Shown here in pieces: positions 4,367 through 28,799 of a stretch of 64,000 bases of DNA. Both the position numbers and the translations under genes were made by a program. Origin of the DNA: Paraphysomonas bandaiensis (taxonomy: Eukaryota > Protista > Chrysophyceae); assembly GCA_965644295.1 (NCBI GenBank), contig CBFFRP010000426.1:248001-312000 (forward strand). The letters run 5' to 3'. Each line of letters starts with the position of its first letter. Within the stretch, counting starts at the first letter, position 1. The notes below the pieces were generated by a model. That model ran no database searches. It had not been told where the DNA came from and saw nothing but the letters and a program-made list of their open reading frames with translations.

Positions 4367-4731
4367 GCCACAGGTTTGCTTTTGCCCGCTTGCTTCTTGA
4401 TAGCATCCTAAACTATTCCTGAGAAGGAGAGTTGTATATCACGGTGTAGAAATTCGTTAGTATTTTTGTATTACACACGAACGTTTACGTATGGTGTGCA
4501 CCGATGAAATACTATTCATTTAGATTATAACTAGAATATTTATCCTGCATAGAAAATGTAATGTTTAGACTCGAATTTTGCGTCCTCTGAAAGAATACTA
4601 TAAATTTCAAAATTAATTTAATGCAAATTATTCAACATTGTCACCGATCATATTTATTTGAGCAGCGATATCTTTCACTGCAACAAACAACTGATGTAAC
4701 ATTGCCAAGATATCTAGCGCCTAGTGCGCAA

Positions 4732-5185
4732 CCCTCAACAAAGTCGGACTCGCTTCTTTTCGTGGTGTTTTGAGGGATAAGCACTGGAGATATTTCTCCG
4801 GGAAACTAACGCGAGCCGCATATATAGTCAGCACTGACTCAGCAGATATTGTTCTGCCCACTCGTAGCCTAATACTTGTGTGGTACAAGGGACACTAGTA
4901 AGTGTCACTTGTGTAGATGTCTTTTGGCTTTGACGAGTAAACAGGCATCCGGGAATGGGCCCACCTCAAGGGCGTCCGGGGGTATTGGGCTGCCTGCTGA
5001 AGTCTATCATCCGGGTTGTTCGCTTTAAGGACAGAGAGCGAAAATGGCTGCACCTTAATGCTTGCGGGTGACGCACAAGCAGCTTTCGTAACGTTAAATA
5101 GTAGGATATCAGAGTTAGTTAAATTGATTTGCTACATTAGTTCTGACGCGTACACGTCTATTGCTAATAGTCAGAGTTTCACTAC
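4732..5185 (+). repeat. Interspersed ~460-bp repeat, copy 1 (near full length, subfamily A); probable non-autonomous mobile element
   Basis: Aligns by eye with 8291-8728, 27081-27315, the reverse complement of 27436-27900 and the reverse complement of 59831-59920. Shared strings include GTGACGCACAAGCAGCTTTCG, AGTAGGATATCAG and the terminal TTCACTAC. Confidence 0.9.
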
Positions 5186-7799: not shown

Positions 7800-8290
7800 G
7801 CGGTGATGCTATTCAAGCTTGGTGGATAAATTGACTGATTTGTGCCGTCGATAACAAACTCTGAAGAGTGCTAGTAAGTTCCGTAAGAAATATATCCTAT
7901 GCGCAGTAATCAAACAAGATACACGGTGATTGGCCGCTATGTGTTTCTATACGACCACTTGTGATCATGCGGGTTTGGTGCTGACGTGTTAGCTCTAATT
8001 CCAAGTGAAATGGAACATGCCAAGCTGGTGCTATTACGGGACGACTTGAAATTCATTCAATGTTTGTCAACAGAATAACTGAAGGAAGGCGATCACCAGC
8101 TCAATCTGCACGACGTTCGTACATTGTTTGACAAACTCATCATAATTCGAGCGTCATCTGGGCAACAATGCACCTATTAATCAGGACATTCCCTTCAAAA
8201 CTTCAGTCGTGAAAATGAAAAGTAGCAACTAAGCCTCACCAATCCGAACAAAATGAACTTAAAATATTCTTGCTCAGTGAGGGTGAAGAA
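7800..8290 (+). mobile_element. Decayed hAT-like DNA transposase fragment (stops and frameshifts)
   Basis: Frame-shifted translation LVDKLTDLCRR*QTLKSASKFRKKYILCAVIKQDTR*...RYVFLYDHL...LNLHDVRTLFDKLI...HLGNNAPI...FKTSVVK resembles, from memory, the TRW-SS and DVRxLFD region of oomycete/stramenopile hAT-like transposases. The W codon appears as TGA. Confidence 0.6.
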
Positions 8291-8728
8291 GATAAGCACT
8301 GGAGATATTTCTCCGGGAAACTAACCCGAGCCCCATATATAGTCAGCACTGACTCAGCAGATATTATTCTGCCCACTCATAGCCAAACGCTTGTGTGGTA
8401 CAAGGGACTCTAGTAAGTGTCACTTGTGTAGACGTCTTTGAGCCTTGACGAATAAACAGGCATCCGGGAATGGGTCCACCTCAAGGGCATCCCGGCTGTT
8501 CACTTTAACAACAATCCTGAAGTCAGCAGATGTCAGGTATATCAACGATCTGCTTGCTTTTAGTGATAGAACAAAAATGGTTGCATCTTGGTGCTTGCGG
8601 GTGACGCACAAGCAGCTTTCGTAGCACTAAAGAGTAGGATATCAGAGTTAAGCACTAGTTAGTTAAATTGTTTTGCTACATTAGTTCTGACGCTTACAAG
8701 TCTATGCTAGTAGTCAGACATTCACTAC
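8291..8728 (+). repeat. Interspersed repeat copy 2 (lacks ~45 nt of the 5' end; subfamily B core)
   Basis: Starts GATAAGCACTGGAGATATTTCTCCGGGAAACTAAC as in copy 1, carries the CCTGAAGTCAGCAGATGTCAGG core shared with copy 3, and ends TTCACTAC. Confidence 0.9.
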
Positions 8729-9047: not shown

Positions 9048-12000
9048 TTATTTCGGGAACATACGACTTCGTTCTCTATCACGTCGTTCAACTATAGCCC
9101 CTCTACCCCCTGGCCCAGACTTCTTGTTTCCTCTAGCCGGTGCAGAGCCAGCCTGTGACGCACCGGGGCCAGCGATGAACTGGTGATACTTTCCACCCTG
9201 TTGAGCAGCACCAAAGGCTGCAGGAGCCGATGCCGACAACTGTTTCGGTAACTGCATCGAAGGTGTCGTGTGGCCACCAAGGGCTCCATGTGGGGCCCCG
9301 TGATGTGCACGAGAGTAATCGAACGATGATGCCTACAGTACATCAAAACTTGTCACTTTCCTACACACATGTATATCATACACGTACCACTTTACTTCTA
9401 TCACCGCTGTTGGACCTTGTTTTATGACTACCAGCACTACTGCTCCTGCTACCGGTACTTCCCTTACTATTGCCACGCTTCCTATGAGTTCCTTCATTTG
9501 ATGCTGACCGTCGGTCCTACAATGATATGAGGGTCATGAAGAGAGTTCAACATAAAAAATACCGCTGATGGGGGTCGACCTCGGCCCGCATGTGTGCCCT
9601 CTTCTCCCTGTTGTGCTGTGCTGTTGGCATGCTCGTCAGCGAGATGCTTCTCCATTACCCTATTTTTATCCGCCCCTTCCACCCAGCCCACACTAATAGC
9701 AAAATCCAGCTACGATGACGTCAACCCAACAATGTGACAAGAGTGATTCGCCTACCGTTCCATCAGCGCCCTTCTCCTCGTACTCTGTTGAGGTTTCGTA
9801 CCACTCTGTGTCCTGATCTTTCTGTCCTTGTCCTTGTCCTTGTACATGCTTTTCCTGGCTCTCAGGTACATCGCGGTTCCTCTTCTTGTCCTTGTTACGC
9901 CCCCTGTTGCGGTTAGATATGTCATAAATCTCTGTCAGGGACTGGGGAAGCGCGTCCAGACTAGATGCAGTACTGACTGCCCCACTGCCTGGTTCACTAT
10001 CAGGGTTAGAGGCGGATACAGAGGCCACAGGGCTGAAGTGCGACCCCTCGCTTTCGCTAGTTATGGCACTGCTACGCTGTAGCTCCTGATGGGCCTTCTC
10101 AAGTCTGGCAATCGTAGCTGCACCAACGCCGGTTGGACTCTGTACAGCTCCGATTAGAAGTGTAGCAGAGCAGATACATTTATGCACAAAACTCACCATA
10201 GTCCGTAAGACAGCATCGATAGGTGAGTCCCCAGGATGCATCGGAGAGGCAGCAGTTGTAGCCCGCCACATAGCATCATTGAAGAGCTGAGCGAGACATT
10301 ATGTAAATAAGGATTTGTCATAATAATATGCATTATACCTGCGGCCATTCAGGGTCTGCACCTGGGTCCGGACTTGTAACTGTCTCTCCAGGCCGCCCAG
10401 AAGCCGAAGGAGCTGAAGAGGACGCAAGATAGAGGGCAGCACCTGGAGATGCGACCGTGCGACCCTCCGCTGCTATTGGAATCATAACGGAGGGTGATGT
10501 ATCCCCCACTGTTCGACGGACTTGTCCGTGCTTGCTCTGTGTGGCATCACATGGACTCCACTTCGGCCGTATTACCTGTGCAGTGCCCTCCTTGTCCTCG
10601 TACACCTCATCCATAGATGCATCACTCGAATCTGTCAGTGTACGGCTGCGTATAACAGGTGCACTACTGCTTGATGGGGAGGACATTGCATCTGCGGGAC
10701 CTAACCCCAACTGCTCACGTTGAGCCGTCACTACCTCCGGGATGTGGTCTCGAAGGTAAGAACTCAAGGGGGCACATGCTAAAATTCCAGCCTCGTCCAA
10801 AGGTACAGCCTGACCCAAGCGAACAAGTTCCGCGTTCGACATGATAAATAAAGGGCTTTCATCCTCCCGACGAGCCGCTAGGTCCCGCCAATTCCACAGA
10901 GCAGCAAGAGCAGCATTTTGCTCCGCTGTGATGTCTGGCTTCAACTGTTTAGATCCCTGTCTAGGATCTACCAAAAGTCTAGAGTATCCAAGAGGGGAAA
11001 ATGGTTCCTTCTCGTACCTCTTGAGACAAGTGCGTTGTGAGGCGATGAGTACGGCCTCTATACCTGCCGCGCCCTGCGACGCATGCACATCCCGCCGCAC
11101 ACAGTCGTAGATGTACAACAGGTAGTGGGTATTACTGCGGGCATACTCCAACATATCTGCAGGAAGTCGGCGCTGGCGCCAGTCCGATAGCTGTAGCCTC
11201 TTGTTGAGCGTGATGCCACAGTGGTATTTAAGCAAGTGGGCTAGGGATAACGTTGGGTACCTCAAGGCCTTAGCCGCGTGGTAGGTGTCGAAGCAGTTAA
11301 CTATATACAGGCCAAAGTCTCGCTGCAGCCAAAGGATAGCATTGTCGCATCCGTGAAAGACCTTAACAACCTCCGGATCGGTGAATATTGGTAGCAGCGA
11401 AGACATATATTTCCTGAGCGCAAGGGCATCAATAATATAGTCTTTTTCCCTCGTTGAAATCTGTAGAAACAGAGGTTACTGATATAATCTGATACGTGCT
11501 AACTAACCTGCATGAGGCATGTGATTCCCTGGAAAGATCTATAGCTGTGGTGCTCAAGGGCAATCGCTATTTCTTTGTAACATTTTATCTCGTTGACCGC
11601 ACTCTGCAACTCCTCCGGTTCATCAATATACTCAAAGGGTCTCATCGCAGGAATAGCAGGCATTACTGGATTAATGTAGGCTGAATCAGCCAGCTGCTGT
11701 TCATGGCTGATTCGTGCGCAGAGTGCCTTGATCTCAGATTCGTACGGGTGGGCATAGTAGGTAACTGGGGCGACCGAGATGGCATCAGACGCCTCCACTG
11801 GCATTTCGCGAATATCAAGAGGGGTGGAAGAATGGGGTTTGGTAAGCAATCGCGGTCGGAAAGGTCGATTGCGAGAGTTGTCAATCTCTTTTCTAAACAT
11901 CAGTTGGGGCTTCGGGATATCACAGGTACTCTCACGTAAGATCCTGTCACGATCAACGATCAATGATTCCTTGATAAGGGAAGAAAGTTTATGAATTTCT

Positions 12001-12383
12001 TCATTGTCTTCACCCATTTGTGTATCAGCATTTTCAACCAACATATCAATCATATCCACAATAAGCTCATAGAGGGATGAGTCCATCAGATCTGTACTAA
12101 TATCCATCACATGAGCATTACATGATTGAATTCTTTCATTGATTTGTTGTATAATTGTTTTCATATATTCTGAAAGTTTTTCTGTTGATGATATAAATTG
12201 AGGGAATGTATGATCATCTATATGATAAGAGTGTAAGGGAGAGATATGAGAAGAGAGAGAGAGATGTGCGTTACCTTTAGAGGATCCTTTACTGGCTCCT
12301 GATAATATGAGAGATGATATCAAACTACGAATCAATCCTTCAGTGTTCTCTGAACTCTGAATTAAATTGTTTATGATTGACAT
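9048..12383 (-). CDS. RRP6: Exosome-associated 3'-5' exonuclease RRP6/EXOSC10 homologue (PMC2NT-like, EXO and HRDC domains, low-complexity tail); predicted catalytically dead
   Basis: KPQL..[87 protein letters not shown] and the HRDC segment WRDLAARREDES. Downstream exons splice in frame through FDYS to RMFPK* at 9048. Confidence 0.93.
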
Positions 12384-13050
12384 GTGTTTGTGATAGGTCG
12401 TTACTCTATTGTACTATATATGAATATCTGTCTATATAACACTATAATATACTGTGGTTAGAATATATATATATATATATACTAACACGCTATAGACCCT
12501 TCAATGGTCTGTATGTATATATAGATGATTACTATGATAGTTTACATAGACAGCTATGGTCATGTGACTGATATATGAAGGGTAATAACAGAACAATCCT
12601 ATAGGCTAATCAACAGTACACTTCATAACTTCGTCTTTCCACTGGTCTCTATATATATTCAAATATAAAGAATACAATGAATACGGTATAGTCCTACAAT
12701 AAGAAATTCAAATGAAATATACTGTTGCTGTATATACGGTATTCTGTAGACAACATATGTGCGCCATATGCGATATACAGTACAGCAAAAGGTATACGAC
12801 TATTCGTAGTGCCTTGTGGTGTAGAGTACGATGTTCGTGTACGTGTTGCTGTATATATAGAGTGTGGTGCAGTGTATATAGACAGTAGTATGGTATGCCC
12901 CTGCAGCTACATGTACTGTATATGAGGTGGTGCAGATCGGCACTATAGAAACACACACATATATATATACACATATATTCTATTAATAACACATTCGTCT
13001 CTTACAGTCGTCATTAATTCTAATTACTATTATTAAGTAACAAGTTAAAT

Positions 13051-14190
13051 ATGTCTAAAAAGAAAGTTCTCTTGATGGGAAAGAGTGGAGCAGGTTGATA
13101 TGGAACTTGTGTCCTCTATATATCTATGTTAATACTGTATATTCATAGGAAAAACTTCTATGCGATCGATTATATTTGCCAACTATATGGCACGTGATAC
13201 AATGCGCTTGGCTCCTACTCTAGGTACATGTGTACGCTTGATGAATATTATACAATATCCTAACCTATAATTAGATGTCGAGCACACTCATGTCCGCTTT
13301 ATGGGTAATCTCGTCCTCAACTTGTGGGACTGTGGAGGTCAATATCGTTTTTACGAAAACTACTTTGATCATCAGCGGGATACAATATTTAGAAATGTAG
13401 AAGTTTTAATATATGTGTTCGATATTGAGTCCGCAGAGCTGGAAAATGACTTTACACTCTTTGATGGCGTGTTGGAAGCAATGGAACAGAATTCTCCTGA
13501 TGCAAGTATTTTCGTGTTGATTCATAAAATGGACCTCGTTGCTGAGGATGACCGCGTTCGTGTATTCAAGCATCGCGAGAAAGTTATTCAAGATATGACG
13601 CAGCAGTAAGTGACTCCAGTACTGTGTATACCTCTGTGAGTCCTGTGTGCAGATTTAAGATTCAATGCTTTGGGACATCCATTTGGGACGAGACTCTCTA
13701 CAGGGCTTGGTCACAGATTGTGTACAGCCTCATTCCAAATGTACAGCTGCTGGAAACTCAACTTGGAGACTTTGCTGAAATTTGTGGTGCGGACGAGATT
13801 GTACTCTTTGAGAAGGCGACTTTTCTTGTTATCTCTCACACATCAAGACTCAAGTACGTAACAATTCCACATTATACATTTAATTTGTCTTGTGTGATCG
13901 TACTTTGGTGATATTTCTTTACATGTAGTCCGGATGTGTACGACAGTCATCGGCATGAACGGATATCAAACATCATCAAGCAGTTCAAGCTCAGTTGTGC
14001 CAAGGCACAGTCGCAATTCCAGGGCATGGAAGTGCGTAACTCTCGTTTCACTGCTTTCATTGATCTCTTCACGAGCAATACGTACATGATGGTAATCATG
14101 AAACGCTCAGATGTGTCCACCACCCTGGCGCATCTGAACATCGCAGCCGCCCGGAAACACTTCGATAAATTTATACCAGAGAACACATAG
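13051..14190 (+). CDS. RRAGA: Rag GTPase RagA/B (Gtr1) subfamily, 5 exons
   Basis: Spliced [83 protein letters not shown]. Confidence 0.96.
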
Positions 14191-27435: not shown

Positions 27436-27900
27436 GTAGTGAAGGTCTAGTAGTGAAAATTTGATCCTTACCAGTAGACGTGTAACAGTCAGACCGAATG
27501 TAGCAAAAGAATTTTAAATAACCAGTGTTTAACTGATATCCTACTATTTGGCGCTACGAAAGCTGCTTGTGCGTCACTGCAAGCACCAAGGTGCAACCAT
27601 TTTCGCTCTCTGTCCTTAAGAGATGAACAGCCCGGATCATGCTTGACTTCAGTAGGCAGCCCAATACCCCTGATACCCTTGAGGTAGGACCCAGATGCCT
27701 GCTGTCTATATTCGTCTACACAAGAGACACATATTAGTGTCCTTTGTACCACACAAGCATTTGGCTATGCGTGTGTAGAACAATGTCTTCTGAGTCAGTG
27801 CTGACTATATATGCGGCTTACGTTAGTTTCCTGGAGAAATAACACCGGTACTTATCCCCCATAACACCACGAAAAGGTGCAAGTCCGACTTTGTTGAGTG
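27436..27900 (-). repeat. Interspersed repeat copy 4 (near full length, subfamily A), flanked by the 9-bp direct repeat TATCTTAGT
   Basis: Reverse complement begins CACTCAACAAAGTCGGAC (copy 1: CCCTCAACAAAGTCGGAC) and ends TTCACTAC. TATCTTAGT occurs at 27427-27435 and 27901-27909. Confidence 0.9.
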
Positions 27901-28799
27901 TATCTTAGTAATAAAACCTGTTAAATTACATAGTATAACCGACACCTGTTCATAATAACTGCAAATGTTGTTGAGGAAGTACTATCCTACACTTCTGTGT
28001 TTCAACCTCCGAATCACTTTCTGTTGGCTCTGAAGAATTAGATTGGTGTAAATTGGTCGAACCTGGCAAATTTTTAACCTTCCTCCCTCCTCATAGCTGC
28101 ACCCCTTGCTTCTCGTTCAATATACGGTGTGCTTCGCGTACCTCATGTGAATTCACCGGACTCTTGAATTACTAATTGCTGTAAATATTCGCCGCAGCAC
28201 ATAACAGTGAAGTTATCGTCACATTACCCTTTGAGAAGACGTGCTGCAGAGTATAACTGTAGAACTATTTAAATCGTTTTGTAAGATAAATAAAATGACG
28301 CCGCAATAAGTACTAGAAACGGAAATATTATATAGATATGCATAGTCTATATATAGTAACATAGTAACAATATAATGAATTTTATGGTCTTTTTCAACTG
28401 AGAATTCTATGTGTACATCATTAATGTAACTAGAATACGATTTCAAACCATACACAAAAACAACAAAATATGGTATTAAAGTAAATCCAATAGCCTATAG
28501 ATTACTCATATATACAGAACACTGTAAATAAAAGTCTAATGAAAGTATGAAGTAAATTGGCAAAAGTGTGTATAAATTGTCGCAACTTCGTTGAAATCGA
28601 CAGGAATTAAACTTCCCTTAACAAGATAAAACTATTTTATGATAAGGTCATACATATAATTAGGTTGTGTATCAATACTTAGTAGCACTGTTAAGTGCTC
28701 TGTGCGTGCATTAGAACACCATACCGTTCAGTAGAAAGACAAAGCTATGTAAATGTTCAGTTCGTAAAACGGACTCACGCATGGATGAATGAGAGTTGT

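Follow-up and report, generated by a model that had tools for sequence, protein, structure and literature searches.

Gene model and catalytic site of the window copy

The window analyzed here is the whole 64,000-nucleotide (nt) stretch of contig CBFFRP010000426.1 (positions 248,001 to 312,000, forward strand) of the Paraphysomonas bandaiensis assembly GCA_965644295.1. On its minus strand, at 12383..9048, lies an RRP6/EXOSC10 paralogue of 8 exons encoding 991 amino acids (aa), with other residues standing at three DEDD acid positions out of four. The spliced coding sequence (CDS) of this window copy translates exactly to P0122, the last intron included; P0122 is a 991-aa "complete" transcript protein of MMETSP1103 (taxon id 36769, genus Paraphysomonas, a heterotrophic chrysophyte). 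In transcripts, all 7 introns are GT..AG and the mRNA extends at its 5' end at least to 12454, and over its 2.97 kb no stop or frameshift interrupts the frames and no splice site is defective. One of the introns, a 47-nt GT..AG intron between two large open reading frames (ORFs), interrupts the exonuclease domain, and joining its flanks yields the Rrp6-typical GITCLMQISTREKDY. Intron 1 (12218-12274) is 57 nt long, stop-free, and in frame, and a naive ORF running through it gains 19 false residues.

Table 1. Coordinates of the RRP6 window copy and its features (window positions)
Feature	Position	Strand	Remarks
CDS of window RRP6	exons 12383-12275, 12217-11508, 11460-10339, 10286-10197, 10139-9756, 9709-9563, 9516-9388, 9332-9048 (stop included)	-	from transcript contigs and P0122
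PMC2NT-like N-terminal region, aa 1-110, diverged	11997..12383	-	contains intron 1
DEDD-Y 3'-5' exonuclease domain, aa 232-395	11095..11633	-	PF01612 (DNA_pol_A_exo1), E 1e-40
ExoI motif EIAIALEHH	11547..11573	-	Asp replaced by A256, GCC 11561..11559; E258 kept, GAG 11553-11555
Intron 2	11461-11507	-	inside exonuclease domain
ExoII motif HGCDNAILWLQRDFG	11311..11355	-	Asp replaced by A314, GCT 11340..11338
Arg371 for near-invariant Pro of 'DWR.RPL'	11167..11169	-	sole other change at a highly conserved column
ExoIII motif YARSNTHY	11122..11145	-	Y379 kept, TAT 11143-11145; Asp replaced by N383, AAT 11133..11131
HRDC domain, aa 454-508	10756..10920	-	PF00570, E 1e-7, 32.1 bits (cut-off 23.8)
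C-terminal clade-conserved motif LPQSLTEIYDISNRNRGRNKDKKRNRD, aa 741-767	9870..9950	-	also in paralogue and stramenopile relatives
Further C-terminal motifs	10266-10347, 9680-9758, 9306-9329, 9054-9101	-	in presumed exosome-associating basic region

In DEDD nucleases, metal A is coordinated by both ExoI acids (Asp and Glu) together with the Asp of ExoIII, metal B by the Asp residues of ExoI and ExoII, and replacing any one of them gives a standard dead allele. The window copy has only the ExoI Glu left of the four acidic ligands (A256, E258, A314, N383), together with the Tyr of the DEDD-Y subclass (Y379), and from this loss of ligands, its exonuclease activity is predicted to be lost as well. 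A phmmer search against PDB aligns aa 38-509 with yeast and human Rrp6/EXOSC10 chains (E 1e-77) and matches A256, A314, and N383 to the acids of yeast ExoI, ExoII, and ExoIII, with the ExoII site falling on the position that carries Asn in chain 5c0w_K.

An initial annotation of this DNA had read the altered ExoI, ExoII, and ExoIII motifs at these same codons, equating the changed residues with the catalytic acids of Rrp6; both points hold, with the gene on the minus strand and the three residues on the DEDD acids in alignment with Rrp6 orthologues. It had also described the ExoI Glu, the catalytic Tyr, the HRDC 'DES' motif, and all exon frames as intact, and this is borne out by the GAG and TAT codons, the PF00570 match with its unaltered 'DES', and the transcripts. 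Its derivation of every change from a single base stands insofar as each codon is one base away from an Asp codon, but the step it gave for ExoII, GAT>GCT, cannot be told from GAC>GCT.

Outside the catalytic site, the most altered part is the N terminus, where the Pfam PMC2NT score is 17.2 bits (cut-off 23.3) versus 46.8 bits in the paralogue described below. The helices of this region align, and its conserved 'SN.IP.G.DF.Y' loop has lost length exactly where exons 1 and 2 meet. Relative to the paralogue, exon 1 lacks 9 nt. The last 200 aa have an isoelectric point of 10.2, and no gained domain is found by Pfam in the protein.

Expression of the window copy and its intact paralogue

The stretch is present in 20 public runs from 11 studies, and 100% of sampled words are present in DNA runs of a study other than its probable source. 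We aligned transcript contigs of four runs, from separate studies, to window positions 9500-12500. Two studies each supply one full-length contig (3.0 and 3.1 kb) that shows 0 differences from the window, skips five introns (CT..AC on the plus strand), and runs past 9562 across the sixth. More spliced pieces come from a third run and from a polyA marine metatranscriptome, with the codons they cover unchanged. No letter differs over the ExoI and ExoIII motifs in X8, X9, X12, and X15, nor over ExoII in X8, X9, and X12, and the window copy is expressed in all transcript data sets examined. The absence of any difference at the three codons in every covering run excludes both assembly error and RNA editing.

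One X12 contig spanning 11000-11113, with 13 base differences, resembled a diverged allele but is the transcript of the paralogue on contig C32, which shows that mRNA is made from both copies. At 9822, in a GQGQGQ stretch, environmental polyA transcripts have 6 additional nt that preserve the frame, and there are variants at 10721, 11052, and 12096 (Q520L, V410I, and one synonymous change); these differences represent natural polymorphism of the predicted dead copy.

Scanning the whole genome with profiles, we found a stronger PF01612 match on contig C32, an RRP6 paralogue with intact DEDD-Y. Its motifs read IAIDLEHH, HGCDSDILWLQRDFG, and YARSDTHY, with the codons GAC, GAC, and GAT at the three Asp sites, and it corresponds to the transcript protein P0121 (957 aa) with two residue differences. 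All seven intron positions are common to the window and C32 copies, and PMC2NT occurs at no locus of the genome other than these two. In blastn and tblastx comparisons, the two loci have the gene and a dispersed repeat in common but not their flanks, which identifies a DNA-level duplication of a single gene and rules out a haplotype, a homeologue, a segmental block, or a whole-genome duplicate. The repeat, about 200-400 bp long with copies 68-85% alike, occurs at window positions 4730-5117, 8290-8678, and 27478-27905 and in many copies on C32. Each RRP6 paralogue is followed, within a few hundred bases downstream, by one such copy, but the relative orientation is opposite at the two loci, which places the repeat outside the duplicated segment.

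In a maximum likelihood tree of 28 Rrp6 proteins, the window and C32 copies are sisters (98/95), with P0001 and P0002 of another lineage as outgroup to the pair and an enclosing protist Rrp6 clade supported at 100/99. By this branching of the sequences, the duplication arose within the lineage. Protein searches returned P0001 and P0002, at 55-59% identity, as the nearest proteins apart from the organism's own two.

Selection and distribution of the changes

The window and C32 copies are 67% identical in aa and 68% in nt, with a nonsynonymous divergence (dN) of 0.21, a saturated synonymous divergence (dS) of about 1.9, and a dN/dS ratio (omega) of about 0.11; identity rises to 84% and omega falls to 0.05-0.08 within the exonuclease domain. 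Saturated dS combined with low omega means that the duplication is old and that both copies have been strongly constrained on average, the "dead" domain included. Branch lengths in the tree are 0.30 for the window copy versus 0.12 for the C32 copy, a ratio that comes largely from the N terminus, which is absent in the outgroup. Within the exonuclease domain, with the P0001 CDS as outgroup, branch dN is 0.059 versus 0.030. Purifying selection acts on the window copy, a genuine RRP6/EXOSC10 paralogue whose mRNA is produced and spliced correctly.

The replaced residues are concentrated on the catalytic acids. An alignment of about 200 Rrp6 homologues has 89 columns with conservation of 85% or more; the window protein deviates at four of these (D256A, D314A, D383N, and P371R) and the C32 copy at two, both mildly (L>F and A>S). 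Three of the four window deviations fall on the four acidic DEDD columns, more than chance would give (hypergeometric p = 1.4e-4). The acids are all kept in 200 of 203 homologues, and besides the window protein, only two of the 203 depart from DEDD-Y. Counting by domain the columns conserved among 21 full-length relatives, the window and C32 copies keep 14 versus 28 of 30 in the N-terminal region, 26 each of 29 in the linker, 87 versus 88 of 95 in the exonuclease domain, 29 versus 30 of 32 in HRDC, and 17 each of 24 in the C-terminal region. By these counts and the PMC2NT score, change has struck two parts, the metal ligands and the module that binds Rrp47/Mtr4, and the rest has been kept as in the active paralogue.

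Several suppositions of the initial annotation can be judged on this basis. It had suspected a paralogue beside an active copy, and the intact-DEDD gene on C32 answers to that description; its impression that the changes do not look like random decay agrees with the clustering of three of the four departures on DEDD acids. The Ala, Ala, and Asn codons that it reported recur in DNA runs and spliced mRNA from several independent studies, and omega of about 0.1, with dS saturated, places the gene under purifying selection. Its proposal of a non-catalytic RRP6 maintained as a scaffold, activator, or RNA binder is supported by these findings, with inactivity predicted and the scaffold or RNA-binding role putative. 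The strong divergence of PMC2NT, a feature it had not noticed, makes a plain scaffold for Rrp47/Mtr4 less straightforward.

Function of the window copy and competing explanations

We think it fairly probable that selection has retained the window gene as a non-catalytic RRP6 that is specialized in Rrp6's established structural, RNA-binding, and exosome-activating role. Its history would have begun with a DNA-level duplication of a single RRP6 gene inside this lineage, followed by the loss of three metal-ligand acids (D256A, D314A, and D383N) and the remodelling of PMC2NT, with purifying selection holding the exonuclease fold, Tyr, Glu, HRDC, and the C-terminal motifs, and with the intact-DEDD C32 copy supplying the nuclease activity. 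The window protein would then dock on the exosome cap via its C-terminal region, bind RNA 3' ends in a metal-free cleft and with HRDC and the basic tail, and gate the RNA or hand it to Dis3/Rrp44, or simply hold it, without trimming. Docking is proposed from the retained C-terminal motifs, and RNA binding by analogy with D238N Rrp6 and EXD1. Catalytically dead D238N Rrp6 still binds polyA RNA, the exo- and endonuclease activities of Rrp44 are stimulated by Rrp6 independently of Rrp6 catalysis, the association of Rrp6 with Exo9 needs the C-terminal EAR, and RNA is bound by the basic lasso (PMC5314766). In S. pombe, the action of Rrp6 on its mRNA targets is described as exerted "mostly structurally" (PMC4986887).

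A number of observations weigh against this proposal. With PMC2NT degraded, the protein may no longer recruit Rrp47/Mtr4, as the scaffold role in its classical form requires in part. The C terminus gives no meaningful sequence match to the EAR of solved yeast and human Rrp6 C termini, so that EAR and lasso are assigned by position and clade conservation only. The asymmetry between the two copies is not significant in a three-taxon count of unique changes (47 versus 34, p = 0.18; exonuclease domain, 14 versus 7). Moreover, the three substitutions are undated, so that the averaged low omega is compatible with recent inactivation.

Undated substitutions would also suit a redundant duplicate that was recently inactivated and is becoming a pseudogene, its low dN/dS being carried over from a long period before inactivation. 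The longer branch and higher exonuclease-domain dN of the window copy point the same way, as do the two non-synonymous variants and one in-frame indel in environmental transcripts. However, the frames are intact, the seven introns are correctly spliced, and the gene is expressed in every transcript set, while its changes cluster on the catalytic acids rather than spreading over conserved columns. Four substitutions in the active-site region and a remodelled N terminus argue for time spent under a new constraint, and we regard incipient decay as improbable. An exosome-independent RNA-binding adaptor, in which the DEDD/HRDC module has been recruited elsewhere as in EXD1 or Egalitarian and exosome docking is no longer the role, is unlikely. 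In its favor, inactive DEDD domains serving as RNA adaptors are documented (PMC4712191; bioRxiv 10.1101/2025.08.03.668247), and the strongly diverged PMC2NT is the Rrp47/Mtr4 link. Exosome- and catalysis-independent roles also exist for yeast Rrp6 (PMC7587046). Against such a shift, the window protein has gained no new domain, and its C-terminal motifs are kept to the same degree as in the C32 copy, which would be unexpected had exosome association been abandoned.

Weak or altered RNA hydrolysis could conceivably persist through Glu258, Tyr379, Asn383 (a possible weak metal ligand), and Asp312, which stands two residues before Ala314. Single lesions, however, are already dead (D238N, PMC5314766; the ExoII Asn in 5c0w_K) and here there are three, and the site of Asp312 is Phe in the aligned yeast Rrp6 and hence not a conserved ligand, which makes residual chemistry very improbable. 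As for an assembly or sequencing error, or editing of the RNA back to Asp, the independent DNA runs and the unvarying transcript codons refute it, and we give it practically no credence.

Inactive DEDD domains, non-catalytic Rrp6 roles, and plant RRP6 paralogues are already known, and the window copy resembles each of them in part. Like canonical Rrp6/EXOSC10 (PDB 5c0w, 3saf, and 6d6q), it has a PMC2NT-like region, DEDD-Y, HRDC, and a long basic tail in that order, but it differs in having Ala, Ala, and Asn at three acids, Arg in place of Pro371, and a PMC2NT region with a shortened loop that scores below the cut-off. Its lesions match in type and site those of rrp6-D238N/A and S. pombe rrp6-cat, and such dead mutants keep RNA binding, exosome association, Rrp44/Dis3 stimulation, and many in vivo functions (PMC5314766, PMC4986887). 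The engineered alleles, however, are one laboratory substitution in a sole copy, whereas the window lesion is natural, triple, and in a second copy with a remodelled N terminus. EXD1 and Egalitarian (PF01612-like) likewise have a DEDD fold without metal ligands; EXD1, whose DEDD domain is inactive, has been shown to bind RNA without cutting it and serves as an RNA adaptor (PMC4712191), and RNA binding has been proposed for Egalitarian. In contrast to the window gene, a young, full-length RRP6 paralogue, these are old families with Lsm or dynein-adaptor regions and without PMC2NT, HRDC, or an exosome tail. Plant RRP6L1, RRP6L2, and RRP6L3, of which RRP6L2 alone is a proven exosome cofactor (PMC8894942), offer a parallel in RRP6 duplication with division of labor, although the duplication was independent. 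We found no report of a plant RRP6L paralogue that has lost DEDD acids, the plant sequences themselves not having been compared. A limited literature search likewise returned no earlier account of a full-length RRP6 that is naturally without catalysis and accompanied by an active copy, which is not proof of absence.

Comparable losses are seen in two further protist lineages, both about 42-44% identical to the window protein. One (P0147, P0206, P0212, and P0209; L026 and L029-L033) has Ala for the ExoII Asp in HGCENAL[YN]WLQRD, with ExoI and ExoIII intact, and comprises two 95%-identical forms, with six or more contigs contributed by JGI and SRA samples. The other, the tentative P0127 (L024, SRR32281773), is a single contig with Gln for Glu in ExoI ('DLQNH') and Gly for Asp in ExoIII ('YARDGTHF'), and it is sister on the tree to the intact P0130. 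These two lineages are the source of support beyond the window gene for a broader and more tentative idea, that chrysophyte-type protists may have repeatedly evolved selection-maintained dead Rrp6 subunits that compete with an active paralogue for the exosome cap. We hold it to be possible rather than probable that two exosome forms result, one trimming with Rrp6 and one only threading RNA to Dis3 or shielding 3' ends. If true, a two-form exosome would mean that the structural functions of Rrp6 have been split from the catalytic ones in nature. Yeast mutants reveal both catalytic and structural/activating roles, whose relative weight in cells is debated, and a natural gene pair with the nuclease in one copy and all but the metal ligands in the other would indicate that the non-catalytic role by itself justifies keeping a gene. 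Such a pair would further add a peripheral hydrolytic subunit to the pseudo-enzymes of the exosome, alongside its phosphorolytically inactive core, and the window protein is a potential separation-of-function protein for RNA binding, Exo9 docking, and Dis3 stimulation without background trimming.

The genome also has Dis3-type RNB genes, Mtr4, and one C1D/Rrp47 gene. The latter (P0213; G000:C297:84555-84887, L023 1845..1382, minus strand) is single-copy, with two exons and 128 aa, and just one other Sas10/C1D-family gene was found, on C199. A predicted complex of window aa 1-135 with P0213 scored 0.02, which counts neither for nor against binding. A third RNB (Dis3-like) locus, G000:C126:30567-32082, consists of four matching pieces with many stops between and inside them and may be intron-rich or broken. 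At G000:C424:168985-170411 (L007 973-2775, plus strand) lies a third, distant Rrp6-like gene with intact DEDD-Y and HRDC downstream but without PMC2NT, which by these features is possibly RRP6L3- or RNase D-like. A CFAP141-like gene adjoins RRP6 in related contigs (L026/L030 and L027) and is not near either RRP6 locus here. The upstream neighbor of the window copy, at 13301-13609 on the plus strand, is the start of a Rag/Gtr1-type small GTPase ORF, a neighbor that the C32 paralogue does not have.

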